The position numbers and the translations under genes are program-made. Under the pieces are notes generated by a model that was given only the letters and a program-made list of their open reading frames with translations, made no database searches and was not told where the DNA came from. Positions 4,126 to 59,629 of a DNA stretch of 64,000 bases are shown in pieces. Numbering within the stretch: the stretch's first letter is position 1; each line of letters begins with the position of its first letter. This DNA is from Macrostomum hystrix (taxonomy: Eukaryota > Animalia > Platyhelminthes), in the NCBI GenBank assembly GCA_950097015.1, contig CATNEN010000007.1:1550001-1614000 (forward strand), in the 5' to 3' direction.

Positions 4126-4257
4126 CAGTGTCCTCTTTCCTCTCTCCCGCTCTCTCTCTCCCTCTCTCCCTCTCTCTCAGGCCAGCACCGGCGTCTCGTA
4201 CGACCGAGTCAGTGCCACGGAGTTGAGTGAGTATGGATTGAGTTGCGGGGCGCTGCC

Positions 4258-4434
4258 GAATCGATTACGATATGTTGAGATTGAAAGCTGGATTTGAACA
4301 AGCGCCTATAGCCTAATGGCTAGAGCGCTAGGCTAGACTCTACTGATGAGCTCCAATAAGAGCGAAACGCGTCTGGAGTTGCCTTGGTTCGAATCCTGAT
4401 TTCAATTTTTTTCGATACATATCGGAACCGATTC
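4258..4434 (+). mobile_element. tRNA-like Pol III SINE/retrozyme-type cassette carrying the hammerhead
   Basis: A-box TAGCCTAATGG (4309-4319), B-box GGTTCGAATCC (4386-4396), T7 run (4406-4412) and complementary outer arms. Confidence 0.6.
4330..4384 (+). ncRNA. Type I hammerhead ribozyme
   Basis: Stem I CUCUA/UGGAG extended by AGGC/GCCU; core CUGAUGA (4343-4349); stem II GCUC-CAAUAA-GAGC; GAAA; minimal palindromic stem III (ACGCGU); GUC cleavage triplet at 4371-4373. Confidence 0.85.
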
Positions 4435-4887
4435 CAACATTAGATTTTTGAAATTCAATGGGCAGTGTCCTCTCTCCTCTCTCCCGCTCTCTCTCTCTCC
4501 CTCTCTCCCTCTCCCATCTACCACTCTCTCCCATCTACCACTCTCTCCCTCCACAACTCAATGAGTCTACTTAACTGGCATTTGGCCGCCCATTTACAGA
4601 AAAATTGCTCACTTTTGTCATTTGTGAACAAGAACCCCATAATTACCACAATTTATTTGCACTTCAGCCGGGAAAAATTCTACTTCTAGACAAGACCAAA
4701 TGCAGTCTGGCGGGTATTCTAAGTGGTTAATTTATTTGAGTACCTACGAGTAGTTAAGTGTTTTGTTTAACCGCTGACTTGCCTGCAGAGACCGTTCCTG
4801 TCAATTAGCGCTGCTCTGCCTCAGCCTGCGGAGCTCATGCTCACACCCAGGCCTGATTCTATTATCGGATCTGGGAGAAGGGAATTT

Positions 4888-4901: not shown

Positions 4902-5089
4902 TAATAAATTCTGCCGCTATCGTCACCCAGAATTATAGAGAGGGTAGGAAAGAAATCTAAGAAGGTTTAAACCATGTTTAAGGGTGCCCCAGTATTAAAG
5001 AATTATGGATGAGTAGAGTAAACAGGATTGATGGGATGAGGGATTTAAAATGCCAAACTAGAAGAGATTAAGAAGCTGGGAATGAAGAA

Positions 5090-5270
5090 CAGGGAATGAA
5101 CAGGGAATGAAGAAAAATGAATGAAGAATAGGGAATGAACAGGGACTGAACGGGGAGTGAAGAATGTGGAATGAACAGGGAGTGAAGAACACGGAATGAA
5201 CAGTGAATGAAGAACACGGAATGAACAGTGAATGAAGAACAGGGAATGAACAGGGAATGAAGAACAGATT
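5090..5270. repeat. Purine-rich minisatellite
   Basis: AATGAAGAACAGGGAATGAACAGGG-like units. Confidence 0.8.
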
Positions 5271-5756: not shown

Positions 5757-5841
5757 ATCTGTCTGTTTGTCTGTCTGTCTGTCTGTGCTGGGTGTCTGTC
5801 TGTTTTTCTGTCTGTCTGTCTGTCTGTCTGTCTGTGCTGGG

Positions 5842-5872
<31 letters not shown>

Positions 5873-5878
5873 GCTGGG

Positions 5879-5921
<43 letters not shown>

Positions 5922-6012
5922 GCTGGGTGTCTGTCTGTCTGTCTGTGCTGGGTGTCTGTCTGTCTGTCTGTGCTGGGTGTCTGTCTGTCTGTGCTGGGTG
6001 TCTGTCTGTTTT

Positions 6013-6049
<37 letters not shown>

Positions 6050-6105
6050 GCTGGGTGTCTGTCTGTCTGTCTGTGCTGGGTGTCTGTCTGTCTGTCTGTG
6101 CTGGG

Positions 6106-6136
<31 letters not shown>

Positions 6137-6156
6137 GCTGGGTGTCTGTCTGTTTT

Positions 6157-6195
<39 letters not shown>

Positions 6196-6224
6196 TTCTG
6201 TCTGTCTGTCTGTCTGTCTGTTTT

Positions 6225-6293
<69 letters not shown>

Positions 6294-6328
6294 TTTTCTG
6301 TCTGTCTGTCTGTCTGTCTGTCTTTTTT

Positions 6329-6369
<41 letters not shown>

Positions 6370-6408
6370 TTTTCTGTCTGTCTGTCTGTCTGTCCGTCTG
6401 TCTGTTTT

Positions 6409-6439
<31 letters not shown>

Positions 6440-6478
6440 GTCTGTCTGTCTGTCTGTCTATCAATATGTCTGTCTGCG
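5757..6478. repeat. (TCTG)n microsatellite with TGCTGGGTG interruptions
   Basis: Direct reading of the sequence. Confidence 0.95.
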
Positions 6479-59105: not shown

Positions 59106-59629
59106 AGATGTCCACCTGTTGAGGAGTTGGAATCCTGAGTAAACTTAAATTTAATTCCTTTAATCTGAGCACATCGTGTATACTTGGATGCACGCATTGC
59201 ATAAATCGTGAGCTTTAAAGGAGGAGGCGTGAATTCCCCTGCACTCACAAATCTATTTATGAGTAGTAATTGAGCAGTGGTGTAGCTTTCCAGTGTACAC
59301 ATCTCAGTTTAATGAAGAAACTGTGTTCCAGTGTTTATTCTCTTCTTGGCTATCCAACTTTTTACACTTCAGAGCTGGCTTTTGTGATTTATAGTATTTT
59401 CTTAACAGCTCTCAATACCAGCTCACCACTAGGCTACAACCCAAGTCGATATATAAAGGAAAATCAAGATAATCATATTGTTTCATGACTTGTAGTTCTT
59501 CTGAGCCTAAGAGTTTCAAATGTATGAGGACCAGCTTGTCATCCTTAGTTAGCCGGCTGCATTGTCTTGTCTGTTTTTGCATTGTTCCTTTTTCGCATTG
59601 TTTTCTGTGCTTTTTAGTCGGTGTTCGAG

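Follow-up and report, generated by a model that had tools for sequence, protein, structure and literature searches.

Here we describe a mobile repeat of the flatworm Macrostomum hystrix that surrounds a hammerhead ribozyme at positions 4258-4434 of a 64,000-nucleotide (nt) stretch of its genome (GenBank assembly GCA_950097015.1, contig CATNEN010000007.1, positions 1,550,001 to 1,614,000 of the forward strand). We call this whole stretch the window and use its coordinates throughout. The feature had been picked out from the letters of the window alone, as a hammerhead built into a tRNA-like RNA polymerase III (Pol III) cassette and as part of a nonautonomous, self-cleaving retroelement. It is the center of one full-length, near-consensus copy of a young, protein-less mobile repeat of M. 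hystrix. We consider it probable that this hammerhead repeat is a young, noncoding, nonautonomous retroelement family with a dimer-type ribozyme and target-primed copying. The retroelement proposal of the sequence-only reading is borne out: the copies are numerous and young, their 5' truncation varies while the 3' end stays constant, and both target duplications and partial tandems occur.

Further copies are plentiful in the genome. A BLAST search with window stretch 4176-4462 returned at least 50 matches at 95 to 100% identity, spread over many contigs. The 31-nt ribozyme motif occurs 92 times at up to 3 mismatches, 48 of them exact, while its reversed control occurs 0 times, and the junction between the core of the repeat and its CT-rich tract occurs 129 times. 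The family numbers about 130 copies. Their median divergence, measured against the majority base of each alignment column, is 1.5%, and the window copy differs from the family majority by one base change (C4428) and by a run of seven T residues (T7) in place of six (T6). As read off the motif matches, 7 of the 32 ribozymes with one mismatch are altered at an invariant core or cleavage-site base, and the other changes lie mostly in loop 2. All reported genome matches to the Rfam models HH9 and Hammerhead_1 fall at the coordinates of this family. No open reading frames are found in the 337-nt unit except artifacts running through satellite, and a noncoding repeat of this size with a type I hammerhead lies within the 170 to 400 nt that defines a retrozyme lacking long terminal repeats (non-LTR retrozyme). 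That the family might be undescribed in this lineage still appears sound, as our literature search turned up no paper joining Macrostomum and hammerhead ribozymes; the M. hystrix assembly paper left repeats uncharacterized (PMC10468722).

The ends and flanks of the copies point to retrotransposition. Our census covered 80 aligned pieces at 70 sites, collapsed to 71 independent insertions. The apparent 3' end lies inside the CT-rich tract in 71 of 71 insertions, whereas the 5' end varies: 21 end in the upstream tract (approximately one unit), 35 in the core, and 15 in a second upstream unit, with the longest insertion reaching 1.6 units. Where flanks are unique, target duplications of about 80 nt (insertion L092) and 17 nt (L093) can be seen, and fillers of 40 to 67 nt occupy the 5' junctions of L044, L045, and L060. 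Taken together, a constant 3' end, variable 5' ends, target duplications, and fillers are marks of target-primed reverse transcription, and this is retrotransposition of the kind associated with Penelope-like elements, non-LTR retrozymes, and the Sm-alpha repeats of schistosomes. The fillers of L045 and L060 measure 40 to 45 nt, and that of L045 is a stutter of ATATGTAT-like motifs beside the CGATACATATCG palindrome of the element.

The window copy illustrates the anatomy of the family, all of it on the plus strand. The unit consists of a 54-nt CT-rich tract (CAGTGTCC...CTCTCA) and a 283-nt core (4180-4462). An upstream copy of the tract lies at 4126-4179 and is a direct repeat, at 89%, of the downstream copy at 4463-4516; as insertion alignments also show, the insertion terminates on its 3' side in this second tract (4463-4513 as annotated), which passes into the satellite of the host without a break. 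The 5' end of the window insertion is the first base or two of the upstream tract (4126). The host is a 17-bp CT-rich satellite, ATCTACCACTCTCTCCC, which extends from 3366 to about 4126 in some 45 copies at 92% match (Tandem Repeats Finder); it is split by the insertion and resumes at 4509-4549, with only 2.4 copies there. The 5' part of the core (4180-4257) is GA/GT-rich and occurs in every full-length copy; the predicted fold of the unit RNA (z score -4.0) pairs it with the CU-rich tract. The core closes with a small predicted hairpin at 4435-4462, up to the core/tract junction counted above.

Between these parts lies the fold-back cassette (4258-4434), in which three nested inverted repeats enclose a hairpin and the ribozyme (-68.6 kcal/mol, z -7.35 against shuffles). 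The outer repeat pairs 4258-4275 with 4417-4434 at 16 of 18 positions (17 of 18 given the T usual for the family at 4428), the middle one 4280-4286 with 4400-4406 at 7 of 7, and the inner one 4290-4299 with 4387-4396 at 9 of 10. The hairpin at 4301-4329, supported by sequence and fold, holds an A-box-like element, TAGCCTAATGG (4309-4319). All of these inverted repeats, and the hairpin, had been placed correctly by the sequence-only reading. The minus strand of 4258-4434 folds nearly as well, because the palindromes exist at the DNA level.

These palindromes invite the reading that the element is a DNA transposon, either a miniature inverted-repeat transposable element or a fold-back transposon, bounded by the 18-bp repeats 4258-4275 and 4417-4434 and carrying the hammerhead and boxes as passengers. 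The long nested inverted repeats and the good folding of both strands speak for it. The insertions, however, argue strongly otherwise: the ends of the copies never coincide with the repeats; all full copies reach 78 nt beyond them on the left and, on the right, a further 28 nt followed by the CT tract; truncation affects the 5' side only; and a short duplication flanking the repeats is missing. We therefore rejected this reading, which can hardly be correct, on the insertion ends, the one-sided truncation, and the missing repeat-flanking duplication. The 177-nt span first delimited is not the element itself, whose unit measures 337 nt and does not terminate at the inverted repeats.

The family has a strict target. 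On the sense strand, the 60-nt flanks are at least 80% C+T in 60 of 80 cases upstream and 62 of 80 downstream, as against 2% of window 60-mers on either strand, and CT-rich flanks in the opposite orientation number 0. The host satellites differ from copy to copy, the window copy having the same satellite on both sides. As both the 3' junction and the commonest 5' junction lie in CT-rich sequence, we infer that synthesis is primed by pairing of the CU-rich RNA tract with the GA-rich strand of a nicked target and resolved by like homology at the next tract. An endonuclease preference would yield the same picture.

Partial tandems occur in 15 of the 71 insertions. Each consists of a 5'-truncated unit, a tract, a full unit, and a tract, which is the layout of a pseudo-LTR. 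In the partial tandems that we examined, the tract between the units is constant, with G at fixed places. The upstream partial unit passes position 4303 in 0 of 15 cases, compared with 45 of 71 first units (Fisher p 3e-6), and in insertions L064 and L076 each of the two units resembles its partner more closely than it does any other unit, a comparison that is informative in only 2 of 10 tandems.

One possibility is that each partial tandem reflects two separate insertions, the second into the CT-rich tract of an older, truncated copy. The element does target CT-rich DNA, its own tract is CT-rich, and Penelope-like elements reportedly land in copies already present (PMC6765202). If this were the origin, the upstream copies should show the lengths of solo copies, but none of the 15 passes 4303 (p 3e-6), no full-plus-full tandem exists, and private variants are common to both units in two tandems. 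We rejected this origin, which seems very improbable, on the length distribution of the upstream units and the similarity within L064 and L076. The partial tandems are thus single events within the target-primed copying that we favor.

What template was copied in these events is less certain. It may have been a 337-nt circular RNA, cut by the ribozyme, closed by a ligase, and primed internally at the CU-rich tract, with copying continuing beyond the first lap; we regard this proposal as tentative and somewhat less probable than its negation. It is attractive in that the 3' ends all fall within the CU-rich tract rather than at an RNA end, with none at 4373, where a cleaved linear monomer would end. 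The second lap is also much less processive than the first (0 of 15 past 160 nt, against 45 of 71), as would be expected if the enzyme had to displace the strand it has just made on so small a circle. In addition, the unit RNA is strongly self-paired, and retrozyme RNAs are circular in other animals (PMC7229834). On the other side, transcripts of existing partial tandems give the same structures, no copy attains two units, no back-joined contigs were seen among the assembled contigs, and the two ribozymes needed to release a monomer are present at only four loci. It is unlikely that the template had a single fixed 5' end at 4303, since only 1 of 15 second-unit ends lies exactly there.

The ribozyme itself is a type I hammerhead at 4328-4387, supported by alignment to RF02275, with a predicted cut after C4373. 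Its parts run CTCTA (4338-4342), CTGATGA (4343-4349), GCTC/CAATAA/GAGC (4350-4363), GAAAC (4364-4368), GC (4369-4370), GTC (4371-4373), and TGGAG (4374-4378), so that the invariant CUGAUGA (4343-4349), GAAA (4364-4367), and cleavage triplet GUC (4371-4373) are all present. The complete core claimed at 4338-4378 from the sequence is confirmed. Distal helix I pairs 4328-4332 with 4383-4387 and proximal helix I 4337-4342 with 4374-4379; helix II and its loop occupy 4350-4363, and helix III is the palindrome ACGCGU (4367-4372). A loose hammerhead pattern is found once in the window, against 0.05 expected.

The Rfam scan of the window at gathering thresholds gave no match. In the E-value mode of cmscan, the Hammerhead_HH9 model (RF02275) aligned over its full length to 4325-4396 (38.7 bits, E 1.6e-8) with posterior '*' in the core, the score loss coming only from a 5-column deletion in helix III. 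Hammerhead_1 (RF00163) reached 31.4 bits on sister copies, against a cutoff of 34. The covariance-model search proposed earlier supports the identification through the HH9 alignment and its E value, while neither model passes its gathering threshold.

Helix III determines how this ribozyme would work. In a monomer it amounts to an A-U and a C-G pair around a 2-nt loop, and 6 bp form only in a dimer; as helix III is only a 6-nt palindrome, cutting is expected only when two ribozyme copies pair. By comparison, the Sm-alpha repeats carry a hammerhead whose helix III is stable and which cleaves in monomeric form, while that of M. hystrix has only ACGCGU. The predicted domain-swapped dimer has a free energy of -39.8 kcal/mol, compared with -34.0 (2 x -17.0) for two monomers. 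Hammerheads with a short palindromic helix III, as in Penelope and newt, cleave as dimers (PMC6765202), and the assignment of the M. hystrix ribozyme to this dimer-dependent kind by the sequence-only reading agrees with our analysis. The 14 invariant core and cleavage-site bases carry 8 substitutions in 967, about half the average density. Four insertions hold two ribozymes 323 to 336 nt apart and, judged by that arrangement, could release unit-length RNA.

The 5' ends of the insertions give a hint of cleavage. Of the 50 that lie inside a core, 4 fall at 4372-4374 (p 0.002). Those of L044 and L092 are exactly at 4374 beside non-CT flanks, and those of L039, L055, and L058 are compatible with the cut site if CT microhomology is allowed. 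L039, L044, L055, and L058, unlike L092, are short copies of 132 to 144 nt that extend from about 4374 to the tract, and such copies would match the run-off product of synthesis primed in the tract of a ribozyme-cut monomer. We take the excess of 5' ends at the predicted cut site as a possible trace of cleavage in vivo, a hint rather than proof. At L044 (G000:C2:7351998-7354798), 67 nt of nonsatellite filler stand between the satellite and a copy whose 5' end coincides exactly with the predicted cleavage site. Within this filler TCTGGAG, the heptamer of 4372-4378, occurs twice, which suggests a template switch at a cut RNA end.

A second question is whether the boxes around the ribozyme still serve as a promoter. 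The A-box-like element at 4309-4319 has one mismatch to TRGCNNAGTGG, and such one-mismatch A-boxes number 28 in the window against 22 expected, so that by itself this match is weak evidence. The perfect B-box, GGTTCGAATCC (4386-4396, by pattern match), which is also the right arm of the innermost inverted repeat, occurs once in the window against 0.12 expected. A run of T7 at 4406-4412 begins where a tRNA gene would end; the run is T6 in about half of the copies, and some half of the DNA contig depth lacks one of the T residues. A-box, B-box, and T-run thus stand where they had been placed from the letters, and at the sequence level their order is that of a Pol III type 2 unit. The two boxes lie 66 nt apart, farther than in tRNA genes, because the ribozyme sits between them.

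These matches raise the possibility of a working Pol III gene, transcribed from about 4302 to the T-run, that yields a self-cutting, tRNA-like RNA of about 110 nt and whose promoter keeps the family mobile. We consider this unlikely. It would account for the perfect B-box, the A-box with its single mismatch, and the start of the T-run exactly at the expected end of a tRNA gene, and an element inserting into unrelated satellites cannot do without an internal promoter. If the A-box is set at position 8, transcription would start at 4302, and the longest partial tandem starts at 4303, with none extending farther. There is also a precedent in Sm-alpha, which the papers cited describe as called tRNA-Gln by tRNAscan-SE and as apparently transcribed by Pol III (PMC2770079; PMC6765202). 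On the other hand, ARAGORN finds no tRNA here, even with introns or a relaxed threshold, and the Rfam tRNA model has no plus-strand match, only one of 15 bits and E 2.4 on the minus strand. The implied 5' acceptor strand (4302-4308) is unpaired with 4400-4406, and the A-box match is common by chance. A T6-7 run lies once or twice within every insertion, so the RNA that was copied must have read through it, and just 1 of 15 second-unit ends is at 4303, with no pile-up. Finally, in one sequencing run of unspecified library type (X5), a single 332-nt contig over 4183-4468 crosses the T-run. Of the proposed Pol III tRNA-like cassette, then, the box matches and the T-run stand, while the tRNA itself finds no counterpart in ARAGORN or in a plus-strand Rfam match. 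We regard the A- and B-boxes as probably inherited from a tRNA-derived ancestor. The 3' half of the tRNA-like region recurs in inverted form at 4280-4300. Elsewhere in the window, a perfect A-box consensus, TAGCCTAGTGG, lies at 59426-59436 on the minus strand, and ARAGORN calls no tRNA in the window.

The run evidence consists of assembled Logan contigs from four runs of uncertain library type, in which strand, ends, level, and joints are unreadable. Coverage of the element is DNA-like in run X2, run X5 gave the contig just described, and the contigs of run X9 contain no match to the element. The contigs thereby place the element in DNA from the same organism. They break off at polymorphic sites, the T6/T7 run among them. 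In run X11, which we guess to be an RNA run and which is labeled as a different organism, a 157-nt contig matches 4255-4411 with one difference, approximately the fold-back cassette up to the T-run. This contig reflects either a close relative that shares the cassette or a mixed sample.

Several observations weigh against a young retroelement family with a dimer-type ribozyme and target-primed copying, and we gather them here. Both Rfam scores lie below threshold (38.7 against a gathering score of 52 for RF02275, and 31.4 against 34 for RF00163). No compensatory double changes are seen in the predicted pairs of the family alignment, although these had been looked for as support; the family is too young to show them. 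Substitutions are about twice as dense at unpaired as at paired positions (0.0297 versus 0.0157), a difference that rests on three inherited loop polymorphisms (4323, 4357, and 4397) and so gives weak support. The 5' ends are overdispersed, with four at 4338 and four at 4366-4368, so the cut-site peak is not unique, and 20 of the 50 core 5' ends fall inside the ribozyme at 4338-4374 (p 2e-6). Long tandem arrays, which the sequence-only reading had led us to look for, were absent from the genome: no insertion holds more than 2 junctions or 2 ribozymes, there is no triplet at a spacing of about 337 nt, and none exceeds 1.6 units, unlike classical retrozymes and Sm-alpha. We identified no autonomous partner, a Pfam GIY-YIG search having given four genome places whose contents are unread. 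Likewise, no other repeats share the start of the CT-rich tract; a search for this pattern in nonfamily context found a single family copy.

Our analysis establishes that the family exists, how it is built, that it bears signatures of retrotransposition, and which target it prefers; the following sequence of events is a proposal. An enzyme acting in trans, most likely supplied by a Penelope-like element, would nick a polypyrimidine-rich satellite, and the CU-rich RNA tract may then pair with the GA-rich nicked strand. DNA synthesis would proceed toward the 5' end of the RNA and halt at variable points, often in the next CU-rich tract, sometimes after entering a second unit by up to 160 nt. Entry into a second unit implies a template longer than one unit, either a circle or a transcript of an existing partial tandem. 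Long transcripts would be cut down to single units by the hammerhead, and the resulting RNA may be circularized by a cellular ligase. The A-box, B-box, and T-run would be remains of the tRNA-derived head of a short interspersed element (SINE) and may still act as an internal promoter.

The M. hystrix family belongs among the known ribozyme-bearing nonautonomous retroelements. With the non-LTR retrozymes of animals, which occur in platyhelminths and have been proposed as nonautonomous derivatives of Penelope-like elements, it shares a protein-less unit within 170 to 400 nt, a type I hammerhead, a highly self-paired RNA, and target duplications of more than 4 bp (Cervera and de la Pena 2020, PMC7229834; Li, Clavereau and Pollet 2026 preprint, 10.64898/2026.07.22.740005). 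It differs from them in that it is dispersed, with at most 1.6 units, uses the CT-rich tract as its 3' end, has a strict CT-rich target, and carries tRNA-type A- and B-boxes around the ribozyme; its circular RNA, moreover, is an inference.

Penelope-like elements are marked by partial tandems with a 5'-truncated upstream copy, a microsatellite bias, and nonautonomous derivatives (PMC8557442). Their pseudo-LTRs have in common with the M. hystrix family the partial tandem, the 5' truncation, the microsatellite bias, and a minimal, dimer-type hammerhead whose helix III is palindromic (PMC8557442; Cervera and de la Pena 2014; Lunse et al. 2017). In contrast, no reverse transcriptase or GIY-YIG partner sharing sequence with the family was found (apart from the four unread GIY-YIG places), the target is CT-rich rather than (TA)n, and tRNA-like boxes are present.

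The SINE-like Sm-alpha and Sj-alpha elements of schistosomes, as described in the works cited, are flatworm repeats of about 335 nt that also combine a tRNA-type Pol III promoter with a type I hammerhead and require at least 2 units for release, a likeness drawn from published descriptions (Ferbeyre et al. 1998; Laha et al. 2000; via PMC6765202 and PMC2770079). In Sm-alpha, according to the review, the promoter precedes the ribozyme (PMC6765202), whereas in M. hystrix the ribozyme sits between the A- and B-boxes. At the level of the ribozyme, the closest likeness among the models discussed here is to the amniote intronic Hammerhead_HH9 (RF02275), which shares the layout of helix I (6 bp, a 4/3 internal loop, and 5 bp) and has a nearly identical helix II and loop (GCUCCAAUAAGAGC against GCUCCAAAAAGAGC). 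The family differs from RF02275 in its 6-nt palindromic helix III, in its score of 38.7 bits against 52, and in being a repeat element rather than a conserved intronic locus.

A metagenome scan for a hammerhead followed by a B-box gave 0 matches. Hammerheads with the same helix II were found as at least 123 motifs on at least 120 contigs (L097-L216), many from Ga0126336, and among those listed, none has a B-box within 60 nt downstream and none has both boxes. Many share the same loop (GCTCCAATAAGAGC or GCTCTAAGAAGAGC), and their helix III is mostly palindromic, e.g., ACAGCTGT or ACAACGTTGT. These contigs are presumably retrozymes or Penelope pseudo-LTRs of other animals in the samples. As the metagenome hammerheads listed lack a B-box and the Sm-alpha layout differs, the nesting of A-box, ribozyme, and B-box looks particular to the M. 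hystrix family, and a ribozyme between A- and B-boxes looks like a new layout.

Some copies and neighboring repeats merit separate mention. At L031 (G000:C38:21521500-21531000), five identical 5'-truncated copies (4290-4462 plus the tract) are spaced alternately by about 1589 and 680 to 690 nt; here a copy of the element was included in a higher-order tandem duplication of about 2.28 kb. L050 lacks the internal stretch 4293-4335 through deletion, in L053 the piece 4407-4459 is placed ahead of 4308, and L069 is an isolated fragment of 4273-4330. The unique upstream flank of L015 (G000:C3, about 2.6257 Mb) appears by eye to be a coding exon with ...CEIYGWCPTE..., which we take to be reminiscent of P2X receptors. 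Near the insertion in the window lie a 22-bp tandem repeat at 2330-2713 (98% over 2486-2683) and tandem arrays at 5078-5267 and 5758-6476, made up of a 25-bp GGGAATGAAGAACA-type repeat and (TCTG)n, about 177 copies.

For the purposes of annotation, the family accounts for a recurrent "tRNA-like hammerhead" signal in the M. hystrix assembly. A more ambitious combination, in which a working Pol III promoter around the ribozyme joins an RNA-guided, satellite-specific retrozyme that finds its target by tract pairing and is copied from a small circle, strikes us as improbable, even more so than the working Pol III gene by itself. If it were true, the split A-box/hammerhead/B-box layout would represent a novel arrangement in which every new copy restores the promoter along with the ribozyme. 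Retrozymes, Sm-alpha, and Penelope pseudo-LTRs are known, yet their transcription, copying, and targeting are mostly conjecture. The M. hystrix family is useful in this respect, being young and small (about 130 copies at 1.5% divergence) in a host genus that is tractable in the laboratory. Its insertions are unusually easy to read: the 3' end is fixed, the satellite targets are oriented, the partial tandems stem from single events, and some 5' ends fall at the predicted cut site. The family could thus be used to test circle copying, RNA-guided target choice, and the role of tRNA-type boxes around a ribozyme as a promoter.

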